From Mobula hypostoma (lineage: Eukaryota): a DNA stretch of 64,000 nt. The first letter of the stretch is position 1. Each line of letters starts with the position of its first letter. The notes below the pieces were generated by a model. The model had not been told where the DNA came from. It ran no database searches and saw only the letters and a program-made list of their open reading frames with translations. The stretch is taken from positions 15,996,001 to 16,060,000 of the forward strand of contig NC_086101.1 of the NCBI RefSeq assembly GCF_963921235.1, given 5' to 3'. The position numbers and the translations under genes are program-made. Positions 17,507 through 53,598 of the stretch are shown piece after piece.

Positions 17507-18397
17507 CTGAAAACACAGAGGAGCCAATTTAATTCTGTTAAGTTGAGTGGCCCGACCGTTGGGAGGATAAAAACAACTCCTCTGTAGTGGCAAGCTACAG
17601 GAGGAGGATATTCGGCCTATCTAGGCTGTACTGGCTCTTACTAAAGCAATCCAGCTTATTCCATTGCTCCACTCTCAGCCCATCGACCTTCAGACACTCT
17701 TCCAGCTCCCTTCTGCTCACTGTGGTGGAATCTAACCCCAGGTTCCAATAATTCACTGAGTGAAAAAAGTCCCTCTTGTCTCATGAGGTCAGAGAAAAAG
17801 TTCTGTGGCCCATCGTGTCCGTGCCAATGATCAATCTGATCCTACTCTCACACATTTTACCCTCTTTGCATGCCTGTCAGCTCCTCCCCCACCCGACTCA
17901 GCCACTCATCTACACAATTGGATAACTTACAATGGCCGATTATCCTACTGACACAGCCCGCACATGCTGGGGTCTGGGAGGCACAGATCATTGTCCTTAT
18001 CAATAAGGTGAGCAGTTTCTGAATCACTTGTGTCAAGTGGCCTCTGATGTACACTCTCCCAGTCGAGAGCAGTTTTAGTTCCCACAGATGTGTGAACACT
18101 GATGGTCTGGGATTTCTAGTTAATCTAGACTCAAGGGAATACACCGTCATCTACTCAGTCTCCCCTCTCAGATCTCCAGTTCAGGGACTTATTGGAAATA
18201 ATCCAGCCACATGGACAGGAAATGAAAAATGTTCTGACGGATTTTAACCCAATCACCACTTCATTTCATTTCTGAAGCTAAGGGCTAAACACAGCTCAAT
18301 TTAACATTTCTCGGCTACATTTTCGAATCTCTCCGGGATCTCCCCACTTGCCCTGACCTCAGCAAATGCTTGGTTTCTTACCTGGTTTGTGTTCTCT

Positions 18398-18411
18398 TCA
18401 GCTACGTTTTG
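18398..18411 (-). CDS. Exon 15, coding part (A)KRS-stop; the exon itself spans 18382-18411
   Basis: Acceptor ttctttctctacttcacAG, TGA at 18400-18398, donor CAG|GTAAGA at 18382/18381. Confidence 0.7.
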
Positions 18412-21400
18412 CTGTGAAGTAGAGAAAGAAGCAAATGAGGCATCTAAAGCATCAGTAAACTTTACTGACAGATGTCAGATTAGGACACCTGCTCGATCAT
18501 TTAAGATAATTGATGATGATCTGCTAACTTGGTGCCATTTTCTGGAACCAGCACTATATCCTTTGATGTTTTACCCCCGCTGCTCATTTATTCCAGTCAC
18601 CTTTTACCCTATTCATGTTTTAAACCTCAGTCCCCATTTTACCCCATTGTTTTAATCCCCAGTCCCCAATTAACCCCATCCTGTTTAATCTTCAATCCCC
18701 ATTAAGCTCCATTCCTGTTCAATCATCAGACCCCACTTTATCCCATTGTTTTAATCCCCAGTCCCCATTTAAGCCTATCTTGTTTAATCCTCAGTCACCA
18801 TTTCGCCCCATTCCTGTTTAATCCTCAATCCCTATTTAGCCCCATTTCTGTTTAACCCCCTCAGTCTCCATTTTGCCCCATTCCTGCTTAACCCCCTCAG
18901 TCCCCATTTAGCACCATTCCAATTTAACCTCAAGTCTCCATTTAGCCCCATATCTGTTTAATCTCCTCAGTTCCCATTTATCCCCATTCTTGTTCAATCC
19001 CCTCAATCCCTACTTAGCCTGCTTCCTGTCACCATTTTAACATCTCTGCCTATTTTACCCAGATCCCATAGAACCCGTATTCTCATTTTACACCTCAATC
19101 TCCACTCTAATGACTGTATCCATTTTAACCACTCCATCCTCATTTTAACCCCACTGATATAGTTACCCCATCCCCATGTTATTTCAGTCCCCATTTTAAA
19201 GTTGCCATTTTAACCCCACTGACTAGTTTACCCCGTTCCTATTTAACCCCACGATTTTACCCCAGTCCCTATTTAAACCCCATTGATTATTTTACCCCAT
19301 TCCCCATTTATCCCCAGTATTTTACCCCAGTCCCCATTTTAATCCCACTATTTACCCCAGTTCCCCTGAACCCCATTCACATTTTACCTCTGAGTCTCCA
19401 TTTTAATGACTGTATCCATTTTAACCCCTCAGTCTCCACTTTAACCCCACTGACTATTTAACCTAGTCCCCATTTTAACATCAATATTTTACCCCAGTCC
19501 CTATTTTAACCCCACTATTTTACCGCAGTTCCCATGCAGCCCCAGAATCCTCTTTGCCCCAGTCTCTCCACCATGCTTTGCTACCCTTGATACTCACCTA
19601 TCACGTTCAGCTCGTCGTAGCCGTCGTCCTGCCTGCCAAAGGAAGTAGGGGAGGATGGGGTTAATGAGACCCAGACTCTGTGCTGGTGGCACTTTACGTT
19701 TCTGTGGTGATAGTGTCAAATTTTTATTTTACGAAATTCAGCATTTACCTCTTGTAGTGTGTGCATTGGGGCAGCCCCACAGTATCTCCCTACTCCCACC
19801 ATTACATTCTGCACCCGGTGCACAGTGACACTGGTTGCACTGGGGCCAGACCTTTGGTGCATTTTGTAACAGGCATCCATGCAGTGCCCTCTCCCCCAGT
19901 ACTGTGTTTCTGACCCAATGTTCTGCAGGAAAAGAAGCAAAACTACTCAACTCATTCAAGAGGCGAGTAAAGTCATGAAAAAAAAATGTGTATGCGTTGC
20001 TTGAGAATAATGTCAGTACGATAAACACAGGAGATTCTGCAGATGCTATAAATCCAACGCAACACAGACAAATACCACTCAGCTTCCCTCTCACCTGGTC
20101 TCACCTATCACCTGCCAGCTTGTATTCCTTACCCCCACCATCATTCCCTTCTCATTCCTGCTTCTCTCCTTCTCCCCCCACCACCCCCACTTCCTTTTCA
20201 GTCACGATGAAAGGTCTCAACCAGAAACAGAGTGTTTGTTCCTCTCCATAGATGCTGCCTGACCTGCTGAGTTCCTCCAGCATTTTGTGTGTAACTCTGT
20301 TTACGTGATGCTATGCGATGCTGCTGCAATTAGGTGTTTCATTGCATCCATGCATATGACAATAAGCTCCAGTGTGACTTTTACTCACAGAATTCAACCA
20401 TGTCTAATATGACCATTTGGTGTTCTTTTTGGTTATATATTAATGCATTTTATCATTATTTTAATAGTTTGATTATTTCATTAATATTGAAATTGAATAA
20501 TTATAATAAACATTGAATATTAGAGAAAATGTAGCCGGCTGGTGGCGTAGTGGCATCAGCGCTGGACTTCGGAGCGAAGGTTCCCGAGTTCGAACCCAGT
20601 CGGCTCCTCAGGCAGCTTTCCACCCGTGCTGGGTTGAGCGTCGAGCTAGCAACTCGACCTTGTAAAAAGGAAATTGCCTGCTACAGAAACGTCAACAGCA
20701 AAAAAGTTTGATGTCCTATGTTCTCTTGTGAGTTTAAAGGCAATTTCTTCCTCTTTCTAGAGGAAATGCATTTAAGGTCAGAGGGAGAAATTTCAGAGGA
20801 GATTGTGGAGTAAGTGCTTTTTTAAAAAACACACAGAGTGGTAGCTGCCTGGAATGGTGCAAATTGATATAGAAGTACATTTGAGAGGCTGTTAGATCAC
20901 ACAGGCAGACAGACAGAAAGATACACTCACAGAGTTACTCATACAGGACACACACACACACATCACACAGTTTAAGGTGCTGAAGATTTCTGTGTCTCCT
21001 GCCCTTTCACAAAGGAGTTCTGGACTCCCGCTCCACTCTTGTGAAAATGTTGTTCCCAATCTTCTCTCCAATCCTTCCACCTCTGATTTGGTGCCAGAGT
21101 TAAAGGTGATCTTTACCTGACACGTGCATATCGAACCCTGTACAGTGAAATGAGTAGTTTGCGTCCTCGAACAACATAGTCCGAGGATTATGCTGTGCTG
21201 AAGGGCCTGTTTCTGTGCTGTGATTCTGCACGCTCAGTCACTCTATGTATCCAGCCACTCATAAGTAACCCACTTCAAATCGTGTATCCAGCCACTCATA
21301 AGTAACTCACTCCAAATCGCCATCTTCCACCGATGTCTTGGCAGGAGTTCGGTTTTTGGAGTAACTTGGATATATCACTGCATACTGGATGTTCTCTACA

Positions 21401-24400
21401 GTGGGTACCTTGTGGAGAAAAGGATTAGATTAGAATGATCTTATTACAATCGGCATGGAAATCTAAGCTTTTCACTGTAGGCACGGCAATACAGTGAAGG
21501 ATTAGATTAGACCAGGTCCATGTCTGCCCTGATGCTCTCCGAAGAGCCAGATCCAGAGCCAAGAGATATGACAACCAATCATATCCCACATGATTGTAGC
21601 CGAAACATCTCGTAAAATCTTGCCAGGCTGGCCGATCAACCAAACTTCCAAATATCCCATCCTTCCCAGAGCTGTCTGCCATCCACCCTTGCCTCTAAAT
21701 TCCACCCTCTCTGTCATCTGCAGAACCTGTTATCCAGCAGCCCCTACCAGTTACCACCGTCACACGCTCATCTCTTTGTACAGGCCATCTCCACTTCCAA
21801 GCCCTGGTGCAGGGTTCAGGGTTTTGAATGGAAATGTCCCACACCACCACTCCCCGCCACAGAGGCTGCTCAACCCGATGACTCCTCCAGCAGATTTTTT
21901 GACACTCCAGATTCTAGCATTTGCCTTCTCTTGCGTCTCCAGCTAGTTATTTACAGATGGTTCACTGCAACGAAATCTTAAGGATTATTCATTACGGACT
22001 GTACCTTTAAAAAGAGAGTGAGTGTGCCGCTGGTTCAGAGAGAGAGGCACCGAGCATCTCGTGAGTCGCCATTGTGATAGAAGGGCGGAGCTATATTCTG
22101 GACAGCTGGTGTTCAGCATGTTTGGATATATATACAAGGTCAGCTGGCTTTCTGGTAGACACACAGAAGAAACTGACACCAGATGAGCTTTGAGTGCCCC
22201 AAAACGGGTGGGTTTTGTGGATCGATCAGGAGAATCGACTAGTGGCTCTCGCAGTGCGGGAAAAGGGGTGACCGGTGGAAAGCTATCAGTGTGTTTAACC
22301 CTTGCCTGGGTTTATAGTTTTACCACGTGAAGACGGTACCTTTAGTGTGGTTACATTCGGTGACCTTAAAGGATTCGGAGGGCTACGGAACGATCGACGG
22401 CATCGACTTACTTGGATAACAAATCAGCTCTTTCTCTCCTCAATTCTACTCAGCTGAATATCACGAACTGAACTGACTTCGTTTACATACCATCGTAAAA
22501 CTGTATCAGTTACCACTTAATTTTGAAGAAGTTTGGGTTTTGTATTTACACACCTATATATGCAAAAACTGCTAACCTGTTTGATTTATCTGGTTTCATG
22601 TTACTTTATTACGTAGTTACTAATAAAATAGTGCTAGTTAACAGCAAAACCAGACTCCAGGTGTGTTCCATTACTGCTGTTTCTTTTAACCCGTTCCGGG
22701 TAATGTAATATCACCCACATCGCGTCACAGAATGAAACTCAGCCCACCAGATCAATACCAGCCTGCAATATTCTCTCTCCAACATTCCTAGACCCAGATT
22801 CCACTGCCCACCTTTGCAACTTACAGCGGACTATCAAGTTATCAAGCTGCTCAATTTCGGAATGTGGGAGGAAAAGTACAGCACATGAGGCTGATTAACA
22901 AGATAAGACCCCATGGTATAACAGGAGAGATACTAACATGGTAGAAGATTGGCTGATTGGCAAGTGGGTTGGAAGGTTTGAATAAAGGGGGCCAATTCTA
23001 CTTGACCATTCAAACTGCCTCGTCCCATTGACCATTATCCAGACCAAAGCCATCCATGCCAGATGCCACTGCTATCCAAGTACCTATCCAAACTTCTCTT
23101 AAGCACTGAAATTGAACTCCCATGCATCACTTGCACTGGCCCCTCGTTCCGCATTCACATGACCCGCTGAGATAAGAAGTCATATTGAAATTTGGTCTCT
23201 GGAACTTTTTTGGCAACGGCTCTCAGTTCCAGCCACAAACTTTCCAGAACATTCTCCCAATCCACAATAAATTACATCAACTTCTACTCTTGGTACAGGG
23301 TGTTGGGTCTCACACACAAAACGCTGGAGGAACTCAGCAGGCCAGGCAGCATCTGGGAAAAGAGTACAGTCGACATTTTGAGTCGAGACCCTTCAGCATA
23401 ACTGGAGAAAAAAAGCTGAGGAGTAGATTTAAAAGGTGGGGGAGTGGAGAGAGAAACGCCAGGTGATGGGTGAAACCTGAACAGGGAGGGATGAAGTAAA
23501 GAGCTGGGAAGTAACTTGGTGAAAGAGACAGAAGGTCATGGAAGGAAGAAAAGGGGGAGGATCACCAGAGGGAGGCAATGGGCAGGCAAAGAGATAAGGT
23601 GAGAAAGGGAAATGGGAATGGGGAATGGTGAGGGAGAGTGGGGGGTGGGGGGGGGCATTACCAGAAGTTCAAGAAATTGATGTTGATGCCATCAGGTTGG
23701 GGGCTACCCAATCAGAATTTAAAGTGCTGTTCCTCCAACCTTTTGGATGTGTTGCTCGGATTTCCAGCATCTGCAGATTTTCTCTTGTCTGAGGGTGTTG
23801 GGTCTGGTCATTTAGAATCGAGGTTCTTTGAAAGGCAAGAATGAGACATAAAAGTAGGTAGCTACAATCGTTTTGTTAAGATGTACAAGAAAAATGAACT
23901 CACAAGGAAAAGACAAAGAAAAAGAAATCGTGATTGCCTCAGATTCAGACTAGAGATAACAACATCCCAGCGACAGCAATGAACCTATAAAATAGACAGG
24001 CTCATGTAGCATGATACCTGCTGCAAAGAAACTTAGAAGCTTTTAGAAAAATACAGAATCAGCTGTACTCAAATTACTAGAAAACTTACTGAACAATTTT
24101 CCCATATAGGTGATTACATAAAAATGTAAGCAAGCATAGGAAAGTAAACCTACAAGGAAAGCACTAGGCGAATATCCAACAAGGAGCAGCCCAGTGGGAA
24201 TGTGGGCAGAACAGGTTGCAGGGGTTCAAGTGGAAGAATTAGGGCGGACAGACATGAACAGGCTGAATGGTCATCAATTTGTCAAGGATATGAGCTACTA
24301 TATATGTACTTACCTCTCCATCGGAGACCAGCGAGTTGTCTGGTCTACTCTGGGTGTTCACATCTGTGAGAGAGAATACGAGAATGTCAGTGAACTTCTA

Positions 24401-27400
24401 CCGCAGATGAAAACAACTGGCAAGAACATGGAGAGTGCGGGCGAGGAGGAGTGAATAGTGTCACAGGACACAATTCTTGTTCCTAATTCCTTTTGCTGTC
24501 TCCTTGTGGGTTACTCCTGTGCAGGGATTGGTTTCTGCATTGGGAATAAATGGTGGATTTCACTGGCTGAAAGTGCCCTCTCGTCTGAAGACAATTCTAA
24601 ACCCTGGTCTGCTTACATTGGTGAGTTGTTCATTATTGCACTGAAGTACAGTCATCATACAAACCATACCATTACGTCAGTGCATCGAGATAGTACAAGG
24701 GAAAAGCAGTAACATAATGCTGAATGTAGTGTTATATTTACAGAGAAAGTGTGGTGCAAGGACATGAGGAGGTGGATTGTGAGGTCAAGACTCCATCTGA
24801 TCGTACAAGCGAACGATTCAATACTCTGATAACAGTGGGGTAGAAGCTGTCCTGAATCCTGGTGGTACGTGCTTTCAGACTTTTGTATCTACTGCCTAAT
24901 GGGATGGGGAATGAGCGACAATGACCAGGGTGGATAGGATCTTTGATTATGCTGGCTGCTTTGCCAAGTCAGCGAGAAATACAGAGTGCATGGAGGTGAG
25001 GCCAGTTTCCATGATGTGCCGAGCTGTGCAATTCGATGTGGTCATGGGCACAGCAGTTGCCCTACCAAGCCGTGATACTGCCTTAGGAAGTAGAGGTGTT
25101 GGTGAACTTTCCTGGCTGTAGCATCAATGTGGACGAACCAGGACAGGCTGTTGGTAATGCTGACAACTAGGACCCATGGGACAGATGGCCTGCTGAGGTG
25201 AGGAGTGACTGGGGTGTCAGGGAGTTCGGAGGATGCACCCTTTTTTGCATCAGCCACACTCAAGGGGATTTACTTACCCATGCCATTGTCCGTTGAGATT
25301 TTGAATGTCTTCAGTCTGTGAGGAGAAAGAGGGGGAAGGAGGTCACTCATTGATAAAGTGAAAAGGGGGGTGGTTGGGGGAATTGTCCTGCTCATGTATT
25401 GCTTCATAAACCTGTGTCGCTGTGGCCAGTACTGGGGCAGGAGGTGCCCCAGACAGGAGTAGCCAAATTACCAAAAGACAATGGGATAATGCATCAGGGC
25501 GAAGAGAGGGACCTGGAGTCAGATATGTACGCAGGCCCAGTGTAATCTTTGTGCAGCAGCCTTGGGTCAGGTGTCTGACAGCCTGACTAACCAAGAAACT
25601 ATCAACCCCTGCTTTAAATATACCCAATGAATTGGCCTCTGCAGCCGTCCATAGCAATGAATTCCATAGACTCATCACCCTCTGGCTGAAGAAATTTCTA
25701 CTCATCTCTGTTCTAAATATACATCCCTCTATTCTGAGGCTGTGCTCTTTGGTCCTAGATTCCACCACTATAGGAGCAATCCTCTCTGCCTAGGCCTTTC
25801 AATATTCATAGAGCTATAAAGAAGTACAGCACAGAAAATAACCCTTCGGCCATGTAGTCCATGCCCAAAACCATTTAAACTGCCTAATCTCATCAACCTG
25901 CACCAGGTCTACAGCCCTCCAGATTCCTACTATTCATGTCCAAACTTCTCTTAAACTTTGAAGTCGATCTCGTGTGGAGCACTTGCATGGGCAGCTCATC
26001 CCACACTCTCATGACCCTCTGAGTGAAGAAGTTTCACCCCCATGTTCCCCTTAAACTTCTCATCTTTCACCCTTAAGCCATGACAAATGGTTACAATCCC
26101 ACCCAACCTCAATGGAAGAAAGCCTGCTTGCTATCATCCTATCAATATCCCTCATAATTCTATAGGTTTCAATGAGATTCCCCTTCTTTGTTCTAAGCTC
26201 CAGGGAGTACAGGTCCAGAGCCATCAAATGTTCCACATACCGTAAGCTTTTCATTCTGGATCATTCTCTTGAAACTCCTCTGGACTCTATCCAGTGCTAA
26301 AGCATCTTTTCTTAGATATGGGGCCCAATACTCCAAGTGCAGTCTGACCAATGCCTTATAAAGCCTTAGCATCACAACCTTGCTTTTATATTCTAATCCT
26401 CTTGAAATGAATGCTAACATTACATTTGCCTTCCTTACCACTGACTCAATCTGATAATCCACCTTTGGGAATCCTGCACAAGTTGCACCTCCAAATTTTG
26501 AATTTTATCTCCATTTAGAAAATAGTCTATGCCTTTATTCCTTCTAGCAAAGTTCATGATCACACACTTCTTTACACTATATTCCACCTGCCACTTTACC
26601 CATTCTGTCAGAGCCCCTGCTTCCTCAACACTACTTCTCTCTCCATCTATCATTGTATCATCTGCAAACTTGGCCACAACCCTATAAATTCTGCTGTTCA
26701 AATTGTTGACATAAAATGTGAAACGAAGCGGTCCTAATACTGACCCCTGAGGAACAGGACTAGACATCAGCAGTCAAATAGGATTGGTCCCCTTTATTCT
26801 AACCTTCCAACACTCCTGGCAATTTTCTATCCATGCTAGTATCTTTCCTGTAATTACGTGGTGTCTTATCTTGTTAATCACCTCCATGTGCGGCACCTTG
26901 TCAAAGGCCTTCTGAAAATCGAAGTAAGCAACATCTACCGACTCTCCTTTATTATTTCCTTAAAGAATTCCAACAAATTTCTCAGGCAATATTTCTCCTT
27001 AAGGAATCAATTCTGAATTTAGCCTACTTTATCATGTACTCTGAAACCTATTATTAATAATGTACTCTAACATCTTCGCAACACTGAAGTCAGGCTAACT
27101 AGCCTATAATTTCCGCCTTCTGCCTCCCTCCTTTCCAGAAGAAATGAACTAGCTTACCTTCATATTTCATCTTTTCTCTCCTTATGGATTTTTAGTTGCC
27201 TTCTGTTGGTTTTTAAAAGCTTCCCAATCCCCTAATATCTCACTGTTTTGCTATATTATATGCCCTCTCTTTTGCCTTTATGCTTTCCTTGACTTTCTTT
27301 GTCAGCCCCGGTTGATTCGCCTTCCCTTTAGAATACTTCTTCATCTTTGGGATGTATCTATCTTGTTCTTCCCACATTGCCCCTAGAAGCTCCAGTCATT

Positions 27401-30400
27401 GCTGCTCTGCTATAATCGCTGATAGTGACCCCTTGCAATCAGCTTTGGCCAGCTGTACACTCATGCCTCCGTAACTCCCTTTAATCCACTGTAATATTTT
27501 TTCTCCCTCTCAAAATGCAGGGTGAATTTTATCATATTAAAGTCACCGCCTTCCAAAGTGTCTTTGCTGTAAGGTCCGTTATCAAATTTGGTTCATTACA
27601 CAACACCCAATCCAGAATCGCCTGTCCCCCACTGGGTTCAACCATAAGCTGATCTAAAATGTCATCTCGCAGGAATTCTAGGAATTCCCTCTCGGGATCC
27701 AGCACCAATCTGATTTTCCCAATCTACCTGCACATGGAATTCTACCACGACTATCATAACATTCCCCTTGTTAAATGTCTTTTCTTGTTCCTGCTGAAAT
27801 CTGTATCTCACATGCTAGCTTCGGTTCAGAGCCTGTATATAACTTGCATCAGGGTCTTTTCAGCCTTGCAGTTTCTTAACTCTACCAATAGGAATTCTAC
27901 ACCTTCCAATCCTATGCCTCTGATTTCTAAGGATTTCATCTCATTTTTTACCAGCAGAGTCACACCGCCCCCACCTGCCTGCCCTATTGGTACAAGGTGT
28001 ATCCTTAAGCTCCCAATTATGATTTTTCAGCAACATGATGCCCACAATATCACATCTGCCAATCTCTAATTGTGCCAAAGATAATCTAATTTATTCTGTA
28101 TAACGTGCAATAAATGGCGACTCCTTTGCTTGCATCCTCGGAAACAGCTCTATTTCTATCTTTTTCCCTTTAAAGGTTCTTCTGAAGACCCTGACCTGGA
28201 GTTACATACTGACTTTGGTTCTTTGTGGGGATGGGACCCGCTCTCAGGGCCTCACGACCGGCTGCTTTTTGATATCCCTGGATGCGGCCTGGAAGACTAG
28301 CGCGCCTTCAGGCTGCTAGATTTTCGTGGCTCTGGAGATGGGTTGATTCAAGGTCAGTGTCCGACTGAGGCGTCGCAGAAAAACATGGAGCATCGGGAGC
28401 AGTGGGCTAGCTGCCGGCTGTGTGCCCAGAGGCGTACGTTCTTTGGGCAGAGAGCTTGGTTAAAAAATGACCCAGAAGACTTTTAAAACCCTATTATCAG
28501 TGAGTTGTTTGTTATGTCTCCTCTGTCATTGTGAAACAGGGACATGTTTTTTCCCTTATTAGGGCAAGAGAGAGCCTGTTGCATGCGAATTACCGGGTAA
28601 ATGAGTAGTCTTTGGAGTACTGCAAGTCTGTGTCTTTATTGATATTTTGCTGTACGTTTGACTGCTTGGTGGAGTGCGCCGATGCTTTTCACTGGTGGGG
28701 AAGGGGGGACTCGCTGCCCTGCTGCTGCTTGTGCGTGGGAGGGGGAGCTGGTAGGGGGTCTTTGGGGTTCAAACGTTTAACTGTCAATCATTCTTTGGGG
28801 CACTGCTCCGTTTTCCTGAATGTTTGCGAGAAAAAGAAGTTCAGGATGTATATCGTGTACATTTCTCTGACATTAAATGTACCCATTGAACCTATTGAAA
28901 TAGTCCTGTATTCATCACCCTTTTTGACTTTGACCCCATGTTACACTTCAGCCCATCCCACTGACTACAATTTTGCTCCATCATCTACCTAACCTCACTA
29001 TACAATGCATCAACTTGAATACCAACTACTCCTACCATGCTGTCAGGGCACCAGGCTTCACCGCTTCATCCTGCTGGTCCAGTCTGCTCACTGGATGGAC
29101 AACAAACTGCACCATTACCTGATAATGAACTCTCCTCAGCAGAGGGTCATTTTGGGATGGTGATACATCTCACTGCTTCCCTGCTGAATAGAGCACGCAG
29201 ACAGCAGTGTAACACTGGACACTGGGTAACGCTCCATTTGTAGCAGGCCAACTAATCTAGCGGTGGCTGAATCCATACTCACCCTTTCATTGGTGTGTAG
29301 ATCAATTGGTCTTGTCGCTGGAAAGAATGAAAATTAAGGCATGTCACAGATCATAAGACCATAAGAGAAAGGAGTATAAGACCATAGACATAGAAACGGA
29401 ATTGGGCTATTCAGCCCATCAATTCTGCTCTGCCATTCCAACCTGGCTGATCCCAGATCCCACTCAACCCCACACACTGTCTTCTCGCCATATCCTTTGA
29501 TGCCCTGACCAATCAGGAAATGATCAACTTCTGCCTTACATATACCCATGGACTTGGCCTCTACTGCAGTCTGTGGCAGAGAATTCCACAGATTCACTAC
29601 TCTCTGCCTAAAAAAATTCATTACACTGTTCTAAAGGGTCACCCCTCAATACTGAGGCTGTGCTCTCTAGTTCTGGATACACCCACCCAAGGAAACATGC
29701 TCTCTACTTAAACCCTATCTGATCTTTCCAACATTTGGTAGGTTTCAATGAGATTCTCCCATATCCGCGTGCTGCTAAATTCCAGTGAGTACAGGCCCAA
29801 AGCTGCCAAACGCTCCTCAAGTGTTAACTCTTTCATTCCTGTAATCATCCTTGTGAACCTCCTCTGGAATCTCTCCAACGACAACAAATCCTTTCTGAGG
29901 TATGGAGCTCAAAACTGTTGACAATTGTTGACAATACTGCAAGTGCGGCCTGACTAGTGTCTTATAAAGGCTCAGAATAATCTCCTTGTTTTTATATTCG
30001 ATTCTCCTTGAAATGAATGCCACATTGCATTTGCCTTCTTTACCACAGACTTAACCTGTAATTTAAACTTCTGGAGTCTTGCACGAGGATCCCTAGCTCC
30101 CTCTGCACCTCTGATGCTTGAATTTTCTCTCCATTTAAATAATAGTCTGCACGATTGTTCCTTTTACCAAAATGCATTATCATTCATTTCCCAGCACTGT
30201 ACCCCATCTGCCACATTTTTGCCCATTCTTCCAATTTGTCAGAGCCTTGCAGAAATCGCAATGCTTCCTCAGCACTACCTACCCCTTCACCTACTTTTCC
30301 ACAAAACCATCAATTCAACTATCCAAATCATTGACAAACAATGTGCAAAGCATCACTCCCAATACTGACCCCTGAGGAACACAAGTAGTCATTGGCAGCC

Positions 30401-33400
30401 AACTGGAAAAGACCCCCTTCATTCGCACTCACTGTCTCCTGCCTGTCAGCTATTCTTCTATCCATCCATATCTCTTTCCTTTAATGTCACTGGATTTTAT
30501 CTTGTTAAGCAGCCTCTTGTGTGGCACCTTATCAATCGCCTTCTGAAAATCCAAGTAAATAACATCCACTGCCTCTCCTTTGTCCACCCTGCTTGTAACT
30601 TCCTTGAAGAACTCCAAAAGATTTCTCAGGCAAGATTTCCCTTCACAGAAACCATGCTGACTTTGACTTATGGATTCCAACAGTTTCTCAACCACTGGGG
30701 TTAGGTTAACTGGCCTACAATTTCCATTCTTTTGCCTTCCTGTCTTCTTAAAGAGTGGAGTGACATTTGCAATCTGTGACCATACCAGAATCAAGTGATT
30801 CTTGAAAGATCACGCCCAGTGCATGTTTGATTCTATGACATCAAGAGATTTTAAAAATTCCAAGGTCAAGTTTATTGTTCGATGCACAAGTACAGTATGT
30901 GCATGTACAGGTGCAATGAAAAGCTTACTTGCAGCAACATCACAGGCATCAGCATCAGGTACACAACATTCACAGAAAAATATGTATTAAACATGAAGCC
31001 TACACAACATGCAAAGATGAGAAAGTCTGCAGATGATGGAAATCCAAAGTGACACACACAAAGTGCTGGAGGAACTCAGCAGGTCAGGCAGCATCTATGG
31101 AAAAGAATAAACTGTCGACGATTCAGACCGAGGCCCTTCTTCAGGACTCAGAAGGAAGGGGTAAGATACCAGAATTAAAAGGTGAGGTGTGGGGAGAAAA
31201 AGAGTCTAGTTGGCAGGTGTTATGTGAAGCCAGGTGGATTTGAAAGGTCAAGGACTAGACAAGAAAGAACCAGATAGAAAAGAAGAGTGTACCATAGGAA
31301 GAAAGGAACCCAGAGGGAAGGAATAGGCAGATGAGAAGAAGTGAAAGGTCAGAATGGGGAATAGAGGTAGTTTGTGGGGGGAGGGGGAATTGCTTCCCAG
31401 AAGGAGTAATCAATATTCATGCCATCAGATTCGAGGGTACCAAGACGGAGTATAAGTTGTTACTCCTCCACCCTGAGGTTGGCCTCACCTTGGCAGAAGA
31501 GGAGGCCATAGATCGACACGTCAGAATAGGAATGGGATTTTGGAATTAACCTGTTTGACCACCAGGGGAGTCCTGCTTCTTGCGGATGGTGAGGAGGTGT
31601 TCGATGAAGCAGTTCCCCAATTTACAACGTGTCTCACCAATGCAGAGGAGGTCATATCAGGAGCACCAGACACAACAGACATAATCGCACATGAAGTGTT
31701 GCATCACCTGGAAGGACTGTTTGTAGCCCTGAATGGAGGTGAGGGAGGAGGTGTAAGGACAGGTGTTGGGTTGGCATGGACTAGATTAGTCAAAGAATAG
31801 AATGGAATTGAACTTTATTGTCATTGTTCAAGACAAGGAGATTGTGGTGTTACTCCAGTCTGTGCAAAACATATTTACAGTGCATGTAGTACAGCTTAAT
31901 TTAAAAAAAACGATATTTACATGCAACAAGTGACCTTGCGAGTCCATAACACTCAAAGGCCATTGTCGTTATTAGAAGAACCTGCTTTTGTGTTGCAGAT
32001 CTCGATGGCTCCAATTACTTAAGAGAAAACCCAATTAGAACAAATACAAAGTCTATTGTAGTGTAATGTTGCTCTATTGAGGTAGTGATTAGGGTTGTGC
32101 AGAATATCCATGGATTTTATTAGGAAAGGAGTCTGGGATCTTGTGTGGAGTTAATAGGACCTCCCTGGGTCAACAGAGGAGGCAGAGGTCACTTTAGGTC
32201 AATAACGGTGATTAGGAGCTCTCCTGGGTCAATAACATAGTCATATGTATGCACAAGTGCAATGAAAAACTGACTTGCAGAAGCATCATAGGCATACAGC
32301 ATCAGTTACATAACATTCACAAGAAAAACATCAATGAAGCATCAATTACACACAATTTTTGCAATAGAGAACACACTTAGACCAAAAAGAGTTCATCTAT
32401 AGTTGCAAAATGTTGTCATACTGGGGCAGTGAATAGGGTTGGGCAGATTGGATCAAGAACTGGCATTGAACCGAGAAGTAGAGAACATCAAACTGGTGAC
32501 ATTTTGTTACAAATCAGTTTTCTTCTTATGAACAATCCGAGTGAAAAGGACACCATCTTACCGGGCATGCAGGGGCATTCCCATCTTGAGCCTGTTGTGA
32601 AATAAGATATTACAATGAGCATTTCTATTGGTCTACAGGAGCTCGAGAGCCTGGGTGTCCAGACTCAACATTTAGACTGAGACAGGGCAAGATTAAAGGA
32701 GGTGGGCAGAGTAAGTTTTTCTTTCCACACCGAGTGATGATGCTGGGAATGTGCTGCCAGGGGTAGTGGTGGAGAAGGCAGATACAATGGAGATGTTTAA
32801 GAGGATCGTAGATACCCACATGACATTGGACTGAATGGAGGGAAGTGAACCATGTACAAATGGAAGAGATGCACATAATTAGAAACCCTTTAATTAGTCC
32901 AGCATTAATTGTGGGCTGAAATCCTATTCCTGTGCTCTACTGCTTGACATTCTATGTCCTATGCCCTTTGTTCCCAGAACAGCTTCTTCCCCATTGCTGT
33001 CAGAGTTTTGAATGACACCCCTCTTTCACGTCCCTGTCGCGGTGGTGCTGCCACTTCCCGAACCTTTAATTCTATCTTATCACTTCAGAGGTCAAATACA
33101 TTTATTATTGAAGAACATATACTGTATCTCCCCTTGAGAAAAAATTTCTTGCAAGGATTTACAGTAAAGTAAAGAAATACAATAGAATTTATGACAAACT
33201 ATGTTGAACAAAGCTGACAAACAACCAGAGTGCAAAAGAAGACTTACAATAAACAAAAATAAATAAATAATATTGAATTTGAAAGTTCTTGAAAGCGAGT
33301 CTATTGGTTGTGGAGTCAGTTTAGCGCTGAGGTGAGTGAGATTATTCACACTGGTTCAGGAGCCTGATGGTTATAGGGCAGGGTTTGAAACCTGGGATCC

Positions 33401-36400
33401 ACGGACCCCTTGCCTAATGGTATTGGTCAATGGCATAAAAAAAGACTGGGAACCCATGTTGTGAGGTAATAACTGTTCCTGAACTGGCAGCATGGGACCT
33501 AAGGCTCCGGTACTTCATGCTTTATGTTAGTAGTGAGAAGACAGCATGGCTTGGATGGTGGGATCCTTAATAATGGATGCTCCTTTCTTGTGGCAGTGCT
33601 CCTTGTAAATAAGGTGAAGCAGAGACTTTCGCAAAAGAGAGAAAACACAGAGATGAGCACTTGAACCTTTTCTGTGCAAAATGAACTAGTTATCCACGTC
33701 CTCCCTCATCGCGTGCAATCCCCACTTATAACATCCAGTCTCTCCTGCTCTCCACGCTTTTATTCTCTCCACCCATCCCTTCCTCTAAACTATATTTTCA
33801 ATTTTGCCCAGTTCTGTTGAAAACCCACTATTCCAGTACTTTAACTCTGCTTGATTCTCTGCAGATGCTGTTTAACCTGCTGAATATCCCAGCATTCTCT
33901 GATTTTATTTCAGATTTCCAGCATCTGCGGGCTTTTATTTTGCTTTACGACTTACCGTCCCAGGTCCATCATCCAATTGGCGTGCAGTTAAATCATCTGT
34001 AAAATTAATTATGTGCATATTAATACAAACACTGGCAGGTCTACAATTGTTCTCTGCTTCCTACAGGCACCCACACTCACTGTGTAAAGAACTTACCTCT
34101 GATATTCCCCCTATACTTTCCTCCGAACACAATAAAATTATGGCCCCTCATACAGTATTAGCGAGTTCAGCCTTGGGAAAGAATCCAATTGATCTATGCC
34201 TCTTATCATTTTGTACTCCTCTATCAATTCACCTCTATCCTTCACTCTAAAGAGGAAAGCCCTGCCACACTCAGCCTATCCTCTCCAATCCAGGCAGCAT
34301 TGTGGTAAATAATGATGTGATGAGATCTCAGTGGAAACATAGAAAACCTACAGCATAGTACAGGCCCTTCAACCCACAATGCTGTGCCGAACATGTACTT
34401 ATTTTAGAAATCACCCAGAGTTACCCATATCCATCCATATCTCAGCTCCGTGTACCTATCCAGGAGTCTCTAATAAGACCTTATCGTATCCGCCTCCACC
34501 ATCGTTGCCGGCAGCCCATTCCACACACTCACCACTCTCTGAATAAAAAACTTATCCCTAACATCTCCGCTCAACTCAACACAATACACAAAGGGTTTTA
34601 CAGAGCTGCAACATTACTTCACAGTTCTTGAACTCAATCACGCAATTAATGAAGACCAACACACCGTACGCCTTTTTCACAGCTCAATCAACCTGCACGG
34701 CAACGTTGAGGGATCTGTGGACATGGACTCCAAGATCCCTCTATTTCTCCATATTGCTAGGAGATCTGCCATTCACCCTGTATTCTGCCTTCAAATTAAG
34801 CTTCATAAGTGAATCAATTCCCACTTTTCAGGATAGAATTCCACATGCCATTCTCAACCCAGCTCTGCATCCTATCAATGTCTTGTTGTATTCCTTGCCA
34901 CCATTTCACACTATCCACAAATCCACATCCTTCATGTTATCTACAAGCTTACTAACACACCCTCCCACTTCTTCATCTGAATCATTTATAAAAATCACAA
35001 AGAGCAATGGTCCCAGAACAGAGAGAGTATGCATTATGATCAGAGATTAAGGGAACTAGGGCTCTACTCTTTGGAGAGAAGGAGGATGAAAGGAGACATG
35101 ATAGAGGTGTACAAGATATTAAGAGGAATAGATAGAGTGGACAGCCAGCGCCTCTTCCCTAGGGCACCACTGCTCAATACAAGAGGACATAGCCTTAAGG
35201 TAAGGGGTGGGAAGTTCAAGGGGGATATTAGAAGAAGGTTTTTTACTCAGAGAGTGGTTGGTGCGTGGAATGCACTGCCTGAGTCAGTGGTGGAGGCAGA
35301 TACACTACTGAAATTTAAGAGACTACTAGACAGGTAAATGGAGGAATTTAAGGTGGGGGGTTTTATGGGAGGCAGGGTTTAAGGTCGGCACAACATTGTG
35401 GGCTGAAGGGCCTGTACTGTGCTGCACTGTTCTATGTTCTATAACTTCAGAGCACCACAGTTTCCCATCCTCCAGGCAGAATAGGCTCCATCTCCAACTA
35501 CCCTCTGCCTTCTTCATGGAAGAAAATTCTGAATCCCCTCTGTGGGTAAGGCAATTCTGAATCGACATTTGAATTGTCAAGGACACGAGGCTAAGTGGTG
35601 GAAGGCGGGGTTAATTCTGATGGGTACCCACAGGTCAGCTTGGAGAAGAAGGACCGAATGGAAGGTTCTATACTGTATGACACTCTAACTAACATCACAG
35701 ACAAGTCAGCATAATACACTCACGCGGATTGGCTCTGGGAGCTTTTACTTACCCGCTGTGGTGCTGTCATTCAGAGTAGATAGCTGCTGTCTGAAGAGAA
35801 AAATTGGAAAATGTTTACTCCCTGTGTGTCGCTTTACATTGTAATGGCACACATTCTGTAAAACAAAAGTGTGTATCAAGCACTCACCTTTGAAACAGGA
35901 CAGAATCTGTGAAGGGAAGGAGAGAAGAAAGATGCCGATTAATCAATAAACACAAGTGATTCTGCAGATGCTGGAAGTCCAGCGAACCACACACAAAATG
36001 CTGGATGAACTCAGCAGGTCAGGCAGCATTTATGGAAAGCAATAAACGGTCGATGCTTCTGATCAAGAGCCTCCAACAGGACTGGAAAGGAAGGGGGTAG
36101 AAGCCAGAACAAGAAGATAATGTGAGGGGAAGGGAGTGGAGTACAAACTGCCAAGTGTTAGGTGAGACCAGGTGAGGGGGAAGGTGGGCAGGTGATGGAA
36201 GGCGCATGAAATAAGAAGCTGGGGGGAGGGTGATAAGTAGAACAGGTGAAGGGCTGAAGATGAAGGAATCTGACAGGAGAGGACAGAGGACAATTGAAGG
36301 GAAGGACAAGGGGCATCTGATGAAGGTGATGAATGGGTAAGGAGAAGGAAAGGGGCTGAGAGGGTAACCAGAATGAGGAATGGAAAAAGAGAGAAGGAGA

Positions 36401-39400
36401 GAAGAGGAGAGAAATCAATGTTTGTGCCACCAGGTTGGAGGCTACCTACATGGAATATGAGGTGTTGCTCCTCCATCGTAAGTTTGGCCTCATTGTGGTG
36501 GTAGAGGAAGCCATGGACAGTCATGTCAGAATGGGAATAGGAAGTCAAATTGAAATGAGTGCGCTTGTTCGCAGTTCCACCCAGGAGGGAAAGGTGGCTT
36601 CAGAATGCACTGGTTTCCCACTTAGCACTCATAACCGAGTCAGTTGTATGGACAAATCATATGGATACTTGCTTCCATTGGGCAACGCAGGGAGTATAAA
36701 AGATTATGATACGGCTTTATAAGGTATTGGTCAGGTCACAGCTGGAGGTCTGTACACAATTCAGGTACCACGCTGAAGGAAGGATGTAATTGCGCTGGAG
36801 AAGGTGTAAAGACGATTTACGAGGATGTGACCCACTGCCACTCATTTAGAAATAAATTGTTCTTGGTCTCTTCATTCTTGTTTATGTTATTTTTATTTAG
36901 GGACACAGGGCAGTAACAGACCCTTCCAGCCCAACGAGACTGCTCTGTGCAGTTACACCCATGTCACCAATTAACCTGACAACTTGTATGTCTTTAGGAT
37001 GTGGAGGGAACTGCTGCACCCAATGGAAACCTACGCATTCACGGGGAGAACACACAAATTCCTTAGAGTCAGTGGAAGGAATTGTGCCACCCCTTCGCTG
37101 GCACTGTAACAGTGTTACAGGAACCACAATGTCACCGCGCCACCCCACTATTCTACCTTCACTGTCCCTGATGAGCATTTCTTTTTGCACTACGATGCAT
37201 TGCACTGCTCTCCTTGCACCAGGCTGTTGTCTTGTCCTCATGGCTGTATTTGTTGTTGTATTTAATGTTACCACGTACACCAGTGAGCTTCAAACAGGGA
37301 AGGGATTTCATCGCATCTTGGAGCGGTTGACAATAAATTTATCCAGCCTAGTCATCAGAGAGAGCTGCAGAATTGGGCACAATTACAATTAGATGCTGAC
37401 TGACAGGGTCTTGTGCCTATTGATCGCACTGATGTTCAATACTGGGACCCACCAACTCGAGACAGTCCGGAATTCATGGGTGTCCTTCGTGTAGATTTCC
37501 ACCCACATTACTAACCTTTGTGCACAGAGCAGAGGCCTAAACTCTGAATGTACTTCATCGCCATGACAGTATCGCTGGATTTTAAGTGCGGAGCAGAGTC
37601 CTGTACTCGCAGTGCTGCTTGTCAACCGTCCACATCACTGGGAGCAGAGTGGAGTGCTGACCTCTACCTCCTTCATGTCCCTGTCCATACACCAAAACCT
37701 GACCCCTAACTCCACTCTCTGTCCTGAAAACCATCCCTACAAACTTAAAAGTACAACTAAGTCTGGGCCATGATCTCAAGAGAGACCACAGCTCACACCA
37801 TCATGACCAAAGATTTATGGGCCAAACACTGGTTAATGGGACCAGACATCTCAGTCAGCAGAGATGAGTTGGGCTGAAGGGCCTGTGTCTGTGCTGATGA
37901 CTCACAGATCTACTACCTCAATTGCCCTGCTTATCTGCACATGCTGATGAACCCCTTGGGCTTTCCAAATGTTCCTCACCTTTAAGGATATAAAGCATTA
38001 GTCAAAGAACATTGGCAGTGTTGTGTGCAGTTTTGGGCTCCATATCTAAGAAACAATATGCTGGCATTGGGGAGGATCCAGAGGAGAATGACAAAACTGA
38101 TTTGGGAATGAAAGAGTTAATGTATGAGGATTGCTAGCTCTGGGCCGTACTCGCTGGAGTTTAGAGGGATGGTGGGGAGGGATCTTACTGACATCTATCA
38201 AATACTGAAATGTCTAAACAGAGTGTATGTGGAGAAGATATTTCCAATATTGAGAGAGTCTTGGACCTGAGGGCAGCGCTCAGAATAGGATATAAGGAGG
38301 AGTTTCATTACCCAGAAGATTCATTGCCACAGATGAATGTGGAGGCCAAATGATTGGGTAAATTTAAAGCACAAGTTGATAGGTTGAGTATTGGTTTCTA
38401 AGGTTATGGAGGAATGCAGGAGAATGGTGTTGAGAGGGAAAAAATTCCCTCAATATGGAATAGTGGAGTAAACTTGCTGGGCCGAATGGCCAAATCCTGC
38501 TATGTCTGATGATCCTATACTGGCCATAGAGGTAAATGATTCAGTCTCCTTACTTTCTTTGCTGCATACTTTTCTCCGAAACAGGATGCTGACGAGCAGG
38601 ATGCTCCCTGATATTCCAAAGACCGTTAACAGGATCACCAGGAGAAGCGTGACAAATCTCATTTTGCCTGTGGGGGGAAAAACATCTCAGAACACACGAG
38701 CACAAATGGGCCATTTGGCCCTTCGAGACTGATGAAGCACGCAATGATATGGCAGCTAACCTGAAAGTGTTTAACCCCACTGGCGAAATCATTCCTGTTC
38801 CTGCCACAGCCCCTCCTGCCAATTCCAGGGCAGGAAGCGCAGGGAAGTTGCTCTTCCAATAATTGTATATTATGACCAAAAGGTGATAAAGTTACATCGA
38901 ATGTTGATCTTTGTCTAACATTTATACGTCCTACACTAATCCCATTTATTTTCCTATTAATTTTACTGATAACCGATCCTCCCCACCTTCTCTTCAAATC
39001 CTTCCAACTTCTACCACTTCACAACAAACAGGGGGCAATTTACAGCAACCAACTAAACCAGTGACCCACACATCCTTGGCGTGTGGGAGAAAACCAGAGC
39101 AAACGGAGGTGGGGGTTGGCCACACCATCACAGGAAGAATCCATTGAGAAAAGGATAGGACAGTGTGTGACCCATTGCCTCACCTAGCGCCAGAGAGGGA
39201 AGAGGGTAGTGTGTGACTGACTGCTTCACCTCGACCCAGATGGGGAGAGACCTTGTAACTCACTGCCCCACCCAGTCACAGAGGGAAGAGGACAGTGTGT
39301 GACCCACTGCCGTACTGGGTACCAGTGTGAGGGAGGATCGTGTGTGACCCATTGCCACTGTTCTATAATCTGCACACTGAGCCAATCATTGTTGATGGGT

Positions 39401-42400
39401 TGATAAGTGTGTGATCTCCAGCCAGTCACCCCAATGTAATTCTTGTTATCTGTAGTCTCCCATCTACATTCAGCGATGGTCAGCCGGTCCCGTTGGTGAT
39501 GACACTGGAAGTGAAGGCAGGAAATCGGACAGGGCTCCACGAGTAGAAAGTTGATGGGGGAGGGTGGGTATTAGTGGTTGGTAATAAGCTCAGTATTGTC
39601 TCGGGCTGGGAAACCACTCACGTGTGTGACTCACTGTCAGCCATACTCCTTCTCCGATTTCCTCACCAATCCCGTCTATCCGTACTTTGCAGTAGTACAT
39701 TCCGGAATCGCTCTCTCTCACATCCACCAGCTTTATGGAAGCTTTGAAGGAATCCTCCTGGTCAGGCCCAAGGACGCGCCCTGCATACTCTGCCGTCCTG
39801 TTGGAGACTTCGGATGTGTTCCGGTACCAGCTGTAGAACACAATGTCTCCGGAGTGATTGGCATTATGGCTACAGACCATGAGGACCGTTTCACCCACAC
39901 CTACAAATATACTGGACTGGCCTTGTGTAACCGTGAAGCTCTTGCTTTTTCCTGCAATGGGAAAAGAGAAAGTCAATGCTTCCCATTTAGAAATTGGCCA
40001 TTGGGGTGAGAATTAAGGCCCAGTGTTAAAGACTGGACACATTCAACATTTGAGATTGTTTGTTGTCAATCGTCAGTACAACAGCTTGAAGGAGGATGAA
40101 ATCAGAGTTTCTTCAGTTCTGATGCAGCATTAAAATGAGACAATAAGCATAAAAACAAAAGACGTTTATAAATACACACCCATTCTATAAAACACAATGT
40201 ACAAGTAACTGTAAAGTGACAGTGCATGGGAAGGGTGCTGAGGGCTGTGGAGAGGAGTGGCTGATGTGGATGTAGTGGTGGTGGGGTGGGTTAATGATGG
40301 AGGTGTTGGTCAACCTGATACAATTGGATGAAGTGTCTGTTTTTGAGTCTGGTCCATGATGGTGGATATGCCGATACCGAGGTTGTGTTCTGCATTTTGA
40401 AGGGCTCATATGACAAGCTCTTCATTGGCTTGTCATATGAAGATTATTTGATGGCTCTGGGTCTGTATTCGCTGGAATTCAGAACAAGGGGTGACCTCAT
40501 TGAAACCTATCGAATAGTGAAAGGCCTTGATAGAGTGGATGTGGGGAGGATGTTCCTATGGAGGACGAGTCTAAGACCAGAGGACACAGACTCAGAACAG
40601 AGGGGCGTCCTTTTTTGAATGGAGCTGAGGAGAAGTTTCTTCAGCCATTGAGTGGTTAATCTCTGGGATTTGTTGTCACAGACAGCTGTGGAGGCCAAGT
40701 GTTTATGTCAATGATTTCCGTTTGGAAGTTGGCTATTGGGGTGAGAATTAAGGCCCAGTGTTAAAGATCGGATGCATTCAACATTCAAAATTGTTTGTTG
40801 TCAATCGTCAGTACAAGAGTTTAAAGAAGGATGAAATCATTGTTCATTTTTTTTTAAATAATTATTTCTGTTTTTGCACAATTTTTAAATTTAACTATTT
40901 AATATACATATAAATAAATAAACACACACACACACACACACACACACACCACACCACACACATACACGCACACTCAGACTTATACTGTAATTGACCTATT
41001 TATTTATTATTTTTTTCTATATTATCATGTACTTATTGCATTGTATTGCTGCTTAAGTGAACAAATTTCACGATATATGCCGGTGGTTTTAAACCTGTTT
41101 CTGGTCCTGATCCTGTCATCAGTAGGAGTTGGAATTGGGGATAGAATCTTAGAAAGATTGAGGTGGTAAAACGTGAGCAGAAATATTTTAACGAAGAGTG
41201 TGATTGGTCTATGGACAGGACAGTTGGGCAGTTACTATTTTAAATATGTTATACAGTACTGTACAGGAACTGGCCCTTCGGTAAACAATGTTGTGCCAAA
41301 CTAGTTGGTGACCAGATGTACAATTAAACTCACCCTTCCCAACATAATGTCCGTATCCCTCATTTCCTGCACATCCATGTGCCTGTTTAAGAGCCTGTTG
41401 AATGCCTGATTGCATCTGTCTGTGAAAAACACTTGCCCGCACTTCTCCTTTGAACATACCCCCTCTTACTTTAAATTCATGCCCTCTGGAATTGGACATT
41501 TTTCCCCTGTGACAATGATATCAATTGTCTTCTCTGTCTGTGTCTCTAATAAACTATAAACCTCTATCAACTCAGAGGCTTCAGCGGCAGCGGAAGACAG
41601 GCGGAGCACCACCAAACGTGATGAGTTCCTTCTCCTTGTGTGGGGAATTTTTCTTAATTTTTAAACCATAAAAGAGAGATCGGGTCCAGAGGAGTGGTCA
41701 TCATCAGAGTGGGACGAGAAGAGGCTGAGGCCAAAGAAACAGGGAGGAAGGGTAGGTTTTTCCCTTTCGTTATTGCGAATTTGGTCTTGGCGGCCCATAG
41801 TACATTGCAGGCAGGATGGCAGATATGGTTGTGGAATGCTGCTCCTGTAAGATGGGGATTCATGGAACCTGATGGTCTCACTGATGACTACACCTGTGAG
41901 AAGTGCAGCCAACTCCAGCTCCTGAAAGACCACATTAAAGAGCAGGAGCTGGAGTTGGATAAACTAAGGATCATCTGGGAGGGAGGTAAGCTGATAGATA
42001 AGAGTTTTGAGCAGATCTTTACATCCAGAGTGCATAATTCAGGGAGTAGATGGGTGAACACTGAAAAGATAAAGGGAGAAAGATGTCATTGCAGCGCCCC
42101 CCTGTGGCCATTCCCCTCAGCAACAGGTATACCCCTTTCGATACTGCTGAGGGGGCTGACCTCCCTGGGTAAGGCAGCAGCAGACAGACCAAAAGCACTG
42201 TAATCGGCTCTGAGCCTCAGAAGAGTAGGGTGAAGTCAGGCGAAGCAATAATCATAGGGGACTTGATAGTTAGGGGGCAAATAGGAGACTCGGTGGCAGC
42301 AAAAGAGACGCCAGGACAGTGTGTTGTCTTCCAGGTGCTAGAGTGCAGGATGGCTCTGAGCGGTTGCAGAATATTCTTGAAGCGGTTGGTGAGCAGCTGG

Positions 42401-53463: not shown

Positions 53464-53598
53464 NNNNNNNNNNNNNNNNNNNNNNNNNNNNNNNNNNNNN
53501 NNNNNNNNNNNNNNNNNNNNNNNNNNNNNNNNNNNNNNNNNNNNNNNNNNNNNNNNNNNNNNNNNNNNNNNNNNNNNNNNNNNNNNNNNNNNNNNNNN
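53464..53598. other. Assembly gap (135 N)
   Basis: Run of n. Confidence 1.

Follow-up and report, generated by a model that had tools for sequence, protein, structure and literature searches.

This report concerns a 64,000-nucleotide (nt) stretch of the genome of the devil ray Mobula hypostoma (contig NC_086101.1 of assembly GCF_963921235.1, positions 15,996,001 to 16,060,000), hereafter the window, and a gene that lies on its minus strand. Very probably, this is an intact and apparently unannotated gene of 15 exons for a type I membrane receptor that belongs to an unnamed family of sharks and rays and has a cytoplasmic tail divided among at least 10 micro-exons. The exon chain comprises a leader, two V-set immunoglobulin (Ig) domains, a transmembrane (TM) segment and 11 tail exons; its frame is open, its phases are consistent and its borders are of the AG/GT kind. 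The encoded protein is 414 amino acids (aa) long if the candidate tail exon C9 is included and 407 aa if it is not. The tail, proposed at 18382-35906, takes up the 3' half of the gene. It is about 140 residues long, and ten of its exons, with sizes of 19-98 nt, are supported.

The 11 tail exons, C1 to C11, were chosen from candidate lists drawn up for each exon on the basis of the sizes given in the original prediction and the phases required, the final pick being made by splice signals. That prediction, namely 11 exons of given sizes spread over 17.5 kb, was rebuilt exactly, with AG/GT flanks and an open frame on the minus strand. It had also placed the motifs YTPM, IQYAVI, VRYARV and YDEL on separate exons, and this was borne out, although the exon with VRYARV is a candidate only.

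Relatives of the gene were compared at the protein level, by means of RefSeq protein models. A full-library protein search with the second V-set domain (V2) matched 388 proteins, and the closest relatives are Mobula hypostoma RefSeq models, namely LOC134346462 (P0002), LOC134346461 (P0151) and a “pIgR-like” model (P0001). Further members occur in Hypanus sabinus (P0152), Hemitrygon akajei (P0153), Scyliorhinus canicula (P0004), Chiloscyllium punctatum (P0161) and the horn shark Heterodontus francisci (P0003, P0155, P0156, P0024 and P0157). Loci of the family include LOC132393824 of Hypanus sabinus, LOC119975535 of Scyliorhinus canicula and, in Heterodontus francisci, the “turtle-like” isoforms X1-X3 and the “uncharacterized” isoforms X5/X6. 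The source names of these relatives are automatic and inconsistent (turtle-like, SIRP-beta-like, pIgR-like, NCR3-like, uncharacterized), and no description of the family was found in the papers searched. The exons, some of which carry an immunoreceptor tyrosine-based inhibitory motif (ITIM) or another tyrosine motif, are as follows, with identities taken from tblastn.

51784..51826, minus strand: leader exon, beginning with ATG and encoding MKVGAILWLLTVSS; donor gtaagt, phase 1; 93% identity with P0002, P0152 and P0151
50154..50492, minus strand: V1 exon, a V-set Ig domain, phase 1-1, with a J-like YGAGTxLTV end; Pfam V-set E 6e-11
39622..39951, minus strand: V2 exon, a V-set Ig domain, phase 1-1, with IGEGVWLTV; Pfam V-set E 1e-12
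38554..38667, minus strand: TM exon, an uncharged hydrophobic span followed by RRKVCSKE; donor gtaagg, phase 1
35906-35888, minus strand: C1, 19 nt, N-SVLFQ; aligns with NSLLFQ and NSVLVQ of relatives
35790-35753, minus strand: C2, 38 nt, RQQLSTLNDSTTA; matched by P0002 and P0151 and placed by the tail alignment
33996-33956, minus strand: C3, 41 nt, DDLTARQLDDGPGT; 77% identity with P0152; acceptor weak, donor good
32591-32562, minus strand: C4, 30 nt, phase 0-0, AQDGNAPACP; 90% identity with P0152
29317-29283, minus strand: C5, 35 nt, YxxM motif, RQDQLIYTPMK
25315-25278, minus strand: C6, 38 nt, GLKTFKISTDNGM; 75% identity with P0002; splice score 16.4 bits
24363-24314, minus strand: C7, 50 nt, DVNTQSRPDNSLVSDGE; 80% identity with P0002
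21408-21311, minus strand: C8, 98 nt, ITIM IQYAVI; 97% identical to P0002, E 2e-15
21137-21117, minus strand: C9, candidate cassette exon, 21 nt, phase 2-2, VRYARV
19632-19598, minus strand: C10, 35 nt, QDDGYDELNVI; 80-85% identity
18411-18382, minus strand: C11, 30 nt, AKRS and then a TGA that ends at nt 14; donor gtaaga kept
Motif positions, all on the minus strand: YTPM 29288-29299; IQYAVI 21373-21390; VRYARV 21119-21136; YDEL 19608-19619

Searched against the window with tblastn, the proteins of the relatives fall in the order leader, V1, V2, TM, C2, C3, C4, C5, C6, C7, C8 and C10. P0002, P0152 and P0151 match both V domains, in order, with identities of 82-89% (82-85% for V1 with P0002 and P0152, and 84-89% for V2 with its relatives). 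Both V exons have J-like ends, YGAGTYLTV in V1 and IGEGVWLTV in V2, and the closest solved chains are those of pIgR and NKp30, with E values of about 1e-6 that reflect V-set-level similarity only. The TM exon translates as FVTLLLVILLTVFGISGSILLVSILF; K, R, D and E are all absent from the TM segment itself, and the donor is of phase 1, the phase that C1 requires. The order of leader, V, V, TM and long tail, together with V domains that are at least 80% identical, places the gene in an elasmobranch tandem-V family of the LOC134346462/LOC132393824 kind. Members of the family share this architecture, with a number of V domains that varies from one to the next, and their tails are colinear exon by exon.

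The tail alignments carry the case for the micro-exons. Ten of the 11 tail exons (C1-C8, C10 and C11) are colinear with the models of two devil-ray paralogues, a stingray and three sharks; C1 and C11, which are too short to be matched by tblastn, were aligned in this way. Tail identity amounts to 77% with P0002 and 69% with P0152. The tyrosine motifs are kept as well. The YxxM of rays and sharks reads IYTPM, IYAPM or IYIPM, the ITIM of C8 reads IHYAVI, VQYATI, IQYTEI or IHYATL in relatives, and the DYxY(D/E)EL motif of C10 is retained in sharks and rays alike. Wherever one family member has a gap relative to another, both ends of the gap coincide with exon borders of the window, and this gives strong independent support both for ten of the exon borders and for evolution by whole exons. 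Conservation of each micro-exon in other rays and sharks, which had been named as a check, holds for ten exons, matched in order, and fails for C9, which none of eight related models contains. Apart from C9, the relatives differ from the window by five more residues at the start of C5 and by a longer C11 and end. A protein search with the tail region matched only P0152 and P0002, a query with the cut-out tail matched nothing, so that no fragments derived from transcripts came to light either with or without C9, and no Pfam family matched the tail in a Pfam search.

Splice signals provide a second line of evidence. A splice-site matrix, which is crude, was applied to both strands of the region of 18.2-36.2 kb with a cut-off of at least 10 bits for the combined score. 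It yielded 15 short open AG..GT segments on the gene strand and none on the opposite strand. Seven of the 15 are exons of the model (C1, at 20 bits, has the highest score in the region), and the remainder mostly have their acceptor or their donor in common with one of these exons. The exon pattern exceeds chance.

Two of the ten conserved exons differ in length from their counterparts. In relatives, five extra residues (EIQPE or EFQPE) stand ahead of the YxxM segment of C5. The acceptor used here corresponds to an internal CAG that codes for Q in those relatives, so that C5 is 15 nt shorter and still in frame; the homologous bases form a pyrimidine tract, with no AG further upstream. The second case is C11, which reads AKRSLQPEEATNQ in relatives and AKRS-stop in the window, where the +1 frame reads AEENTNQ and matches PEEATNQ of P0002. 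From this we infer that C11 is 8 nt shorter than the 38 nt of the relatives, that the shortening is specific to this copy and that the early stop is not ancestral: the loss of 8 nt shifts the frame onto the TGA. The original prediction was accordingly right that the last exon has 14 coding nt, since the TGA ends there, and this length is the product of a shortening and not of an ancestral stop. The cost of the early stop is about nine or more residues, none of them in a tyrosine motif, and the tail of the relatives continues into further exons.

Other features were seen around the last exons. A 37-nt tandem duplication at 21246-21319, with two copies that are 94% alike, takes in the final 9 nt of C8 together with its donor. 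A second donor-like site, AA/gtgggt, lies 37 nt downstream of the C8 donor, and reading past the first donor gives an immediate DLE-stop. Most of the intron between C10 and C11 is filled by a minisatellite of about 1 kb at 18594-19535, with 10-12 copies of units of about 31-34 nt that are 69-75% alike.

Since the V domains of the relatives are 82-89% identical to those of the window and none of these proteins was flagged as encoded by it, the copy seems to be unannotated. Sequencing reads were placed on 18370-24369 (6000 letters) for runs X1-X3 and X8, the last being a DNA run of a related organism that contains 26% of the sampled words. Transposon repeats, at 20.0-20.8 kb and at 22.8-24.0 kb, dominate the read tables, and no exon junction is listed in them. 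In X1-X3 there is essentially no depth in the single-copy intron bins of 18370-19969. By bin arithmetic, an X2 contig of depth 3.1 fits about 35 bases of C10, ending at the acceptor border at 19632. At the same depth, the bins also fit cover of C8 in its first ~36 nt (21370-21408) and of C7 in its 50 nt. X1 is similar at a depth of 4.3, and its piece also ends at 19632. Such a low depth pattern in X1-X3, with cover that fits C7, C10 and the start of C8 only, agrees with spliced RNA, judged by bin arithmetic and with no listed junction.

In X8, C8 differs from the window at two positions (21377 and 21379), one change being synonymous and the other turning IQYAVI into IQYAEI. The same run also differs at a synonymous C10 site, 19617, and its contig depth of 114 suggests collapsed paralogues.

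Several points count against the reading given at the outset. The protein of the window was itself not among the database matches, and the copy may lack an annotation or have been set down as a pseudogene. The models that support the exons are automatic RefSeq predictions, and no terminal 3' exon after C11 was found when the window was searched with the end peptides of relatives. Runs X1-X3, which bear the same species label, are only guessed to be RNA. At 19617, moreover, the X1 and X2 contigs have A and the window G (a synonymous difference), so the contigs may come from the paralogue LOC134346462 and not from this copy. Finally, binding of SHP proteins and PI3K by the tail, taken up below, is something we only infer.

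The first of these points could also be taken to mean that this paralogue is decaying or silent, with exons that are real by descent, a receptor that is no longer expressed and no tuning by splicing. The difference of the RNA-like contigs at 19617 would agree with this, as would the 8-nt shortening of C11 with its frameshift and early TGA, and the C5 acceptor that has moved by 15 nt. Set against this, the open frame runs through all 15 exons, no splice site is broken, the 15-nt change in C5 is in frame, and the stop in C11 removes only about nine motif-free residues. That stop is also 16 nt before the last junction, too close for nonsense-mediated decay, which follows a 50-55 nt rule. Decay or silence of this copy is considered quite unlikely.

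At its 5' end, the gene is preceded by sequence at 51830-51910 (minus strand), just 5' of the ATG, with an in-frame translation of KKGEVANTKYLLCFSGVT. The same peptide is found in the predicted N-termini of P0001 and P0153. It may be that P0001 and P0153 are predicted from a start too far upstream, or that paralogues share a conserved 5' leader. Masked N bases occupy 53464-53598 of the window. Introns contain fragments of reverse transcriptase (Pfam RVT_1, E 1e-6 to 4e-11) at 30453-30809 (minus strand), 26438-26773 (minus strand) and 46017-46295 (plus strand).

On the evidence of sequence comparison, the tail is modular at the level of family evolution, with each motif on its own exon: YxxM on C5, the conserved ITIM on C8 and the conserved YxxL of DYxY(D/E)EL type on C10. 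This arrangement allows exons or in-frame blocks to be lost, duplicated or skipped without a break in the frame. For example, C4 is absent from P0151, P0004 and P0024, and the block of C6-C8 (38+50+98 = 186 nt), with its ITIM exon, is absent from P0151 and P0155, a loss seen only between genes. The pair C1+C2 forms a unit of 57 nt, or 19 residues, that occurs three times in tandem after the TM segment in horn-shark gene b (P0157 and P0024), and this triplication looks like an in-frame duplication of an exon pair. Further blocks that can be skipped in frame are C5-C7 and, as a pair, C1+C2.

Alternative use of tail exons is annotated in the family, in the form of RefSeq isoform models. Isoforms X5 (334 aa) and X6 (320 aa) of horn-shark gene b differ solely by 14 residues equivalent to C4, so C4 is an annotated cassette in a relative. 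In horn-shark gene a, the tails of isoforms X1, X2 and X3 end after different exons. The original prediction of a modular cassette tuned by splicing thus stood in part. The tail is modular, members differ by whole exons and C4 has its cassette in the horn shark; on the other side, only two of the 11 exons keep the frame when left out on their own, and one of these, the 21-nt ITIM exon C9, is found in no relative. Those two are indeed symmetric as had been claimed, with phases 2-2 in C9 and 0-0 in the 30-nt C4.

Whole-exon differences between genes could equally be due to genomic loss or gain of exons. A broader form of this view holds that all such differences are only genomic losses and duplications, or errors in the prediction of micro-exons, and that regulated alternative splicing has no part in them. 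Most of the differences do lie between different genes, and automatic prediction is known to cope badly with TM and tail exons that are short (PMC6557307). Errors of this kind are also suggested by P0004, which is without a TM segment, and by P0153, which ends just after it. The horn-shark isoforms point the other way, since X5 and X6 of a single gene differ by exactly the equivalent of C4 and another gene has three isoforms with different tail ends. An explanation without any regulated splicing is held to be less likely than not. The modular reading holds for the evolution of the family, is annotated as splicing for one exon in a shark and is only a proposal for the ray gene.

The proposed tuning of inhibitory output would depend on C9. 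Its sequence is present in the right intron and phase, with AG/GT borders and symmetric ends, and its acceptor (5.3 bits) and donor (3.8 bits) score above those of the confirmed exons C3, C4 and C8. At its own thresholds, C9 is the only symmetric, stop-free, ITIM-coding AG..GT segment on both strands of the 64-kb window (128 kb). The ITIM consensus has a frequency of 0.0021 per position in the six-frame translation. With ~3 positions and ~2 symmetric candidates among the tail introns, ~0.01 segments like C9 would be expected by chance; this figure is only rough because the thresholds were set after the fact from the scores of C9 itself. No other copy of C9 exists in the window, where further copies are confined to a repeat core of 27 nt that lies about 60 nt upstream.

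Relatives, by contrast, offer nothing in favor of the exon. C9 is absent from all eight related protein models, from six species, and the junction DLE/xDY that it would interrupt is conserved in them. A motif like that of C9 is found in no relative, and a pattern search of the other fetched proteins gave one unrelated match, in an Ig domain of P0021.

A second 21-nt AG..GT segment was seen at 31728-31708 (minus strand), between C4 and C5 in phase 0, with scores of 9.0 and 3.4 bits and the translation GYKQSFQ. It carries no motif, has no stop in any frame and corresponds to no insertion in any relative.

Three ways of stating the case for C9 were weighed, and all of them are tentative. That C9 is a real cassette exon is rather unlikely. 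Somewhat more specifically, it might be a young ITIM micro-exon, specific to the lineage or to this copy and included in some transcripts, which is put forward as a doubtful possibility. In the fullest version, C9 would be an alternatively included cassette by which splicing switches the tail between one and two ITIMs. Its borders, phase, intron and splice scores speak for such a switch, as do its standing as the sole ITIM-coding symmetric candidate and its low chance expectation. A repeat origin is not evident in the single-copy sequence, and a spacing of 27 residues between tyrosines fits known tandem ITIMs. The complete absence from relatives, the conserved junction, the post hoc thresholds of the chance test and the existence of a motif-free 21-nt candidate in the same tail tell against it, and a switch of this sort is judged improbable. 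If it did operate, inclusion of C9 would raise the number of ITIMs in the tail from one to two, with tyrosines 27 residues apart, and would put a YxxV 9 residues ahead of the conserved YDEL tyrosine. Splicing of a single exon of seven codons would then change which Src homology 2 (SH2) proteins the receptor recruits.

The motifs themselves suggest how the receptor could signal. The ITIM consensus, (S/I/V/L)xYxx(I/V/L), is matched in the tail by IQYAVI of C8, and VRYARV in candidate exon C9 also fits it. An uncharged TM segment means no pairing with an ITAM (immunoreceptor tyrosine-based activation motif) adaptor, and the uncharged TM segment and conserved ITIM together place the protein among the inhibitory receptors that signal for themselves. 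On binding of a ligand, Src-family kinases would phosphorylate the tyrosines of the tail, and the phosphorylated ITIM would recruit SHP-1 or SHP-2. Without C9, 29 residues separate the ITIM tyrosine from the YDEL tyrosine, and sites to which the two SH2 domains of SHP-1 or SHP-2 bind are typically spaced like this. The YxxL and ITIM tyrosines could then dock the tandem SH2 domains of either protein. YxxM is the consensus for the p85 subunit of PI3K, and YTPM could dock it.

The modular layout of the tail is itself already known, and the ray gene adds another case; the principle is not new because PECAM-1 and the FcR-like genes already show split tails. The tail of PECAM-1 is encoded by exons 9-16, which are alternatively spliced, exons 13 and 14 supply the tyrosines that dock SHP-2, and function is altered by exon 14, of 19 residues (PMC2132561). 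In both proteins, an Ig-superfamily receptor has its tail spread over many short exons with tyrosine motifs on separate ones. The ectodomains differ, with two V-set domains in the ray protein and six C2-type domains in PECAM-1. The ray tail is also the more fragmented of the two, with 10-11 exons per ~140 residues and a smallest exon of 19 nt. Alternative splicing of single exons is known for PECAM-1, whereas in the shark and ray family it is represented only by the annotated X5/X6 pair of the horn-shark relative. No similarity of the tail to PECAM-1 was found, and PECAM-1 is not among the 60 best solved-structure matches listed.

Inhibitory FcR-like receptors (FCRL and Xenopus XFL) have an uncharged TM segment and tail exons that are separate from the TM exon, with 1-3 YxxL/I/V motifs (PMC2413239). 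The ray gene resembles them in its uncharged TM segment, in a multi-exon tail apart from the TM exon and in its YxxL/I/V motifs. XFL tails have 1-5 exons, however, as compared with ten here, and XFL ectodomains are made of D1-D6 C2-like domains instead of V-set domains; homology between the two is not shown. Since the ectodomain differs and no tail homology was found, the ray gene lies outside both the PECAM-1 and FcR-like families.

Among solved structures, the V-set domains of NKp30 (NCR3) and pIgR come closest in sequence, with a likeness that extends no further than the general V-set fold (E about 3e-6 for NKp30). NKp30 has one V domain, a charged TM segment and no ITIM tail, and pIgR has five V domains in mammals. 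The ray protein differs from NKp30 in its two V domains, its uncharged TM segment and its ITIM tail of 140 residues. PECAM-1, FCRL and NKp30 were all rejected as identities for the gene by domain architecture, as was CD22, the first guess from YNPM-like and YENV-like motifs.

A further likeness concerns C10 alone. The hemITAM of CLEC-2 consists of an acidic stretch and YxxL (PMC3576117), and C10, QDDGYDELNVIAKR, resembles it in having an acidic stretch, a G and YxxL. The likeness has a limit in that the acidic stretch is not conserved in relatives of the ray gene, which read KDYGYDEL or QDFEYEEL.

In sum, automatic annotation seemingly missed this receptor gene, which now has a checked model of 15 exons and a place in an unnamed family of sharks and rays. 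Members of this family illustrate how the tail of an immune receptor can change by whole exons, as phase-compatible units that carry motifs are lost, duplicated or skipped between paralogues and isoforms. The model is useful for annotating the immune receptors of cartilaginous fishes, where micro-exons are easily missed, and for the question of how pairs of inhibitory and activating receptors arise.

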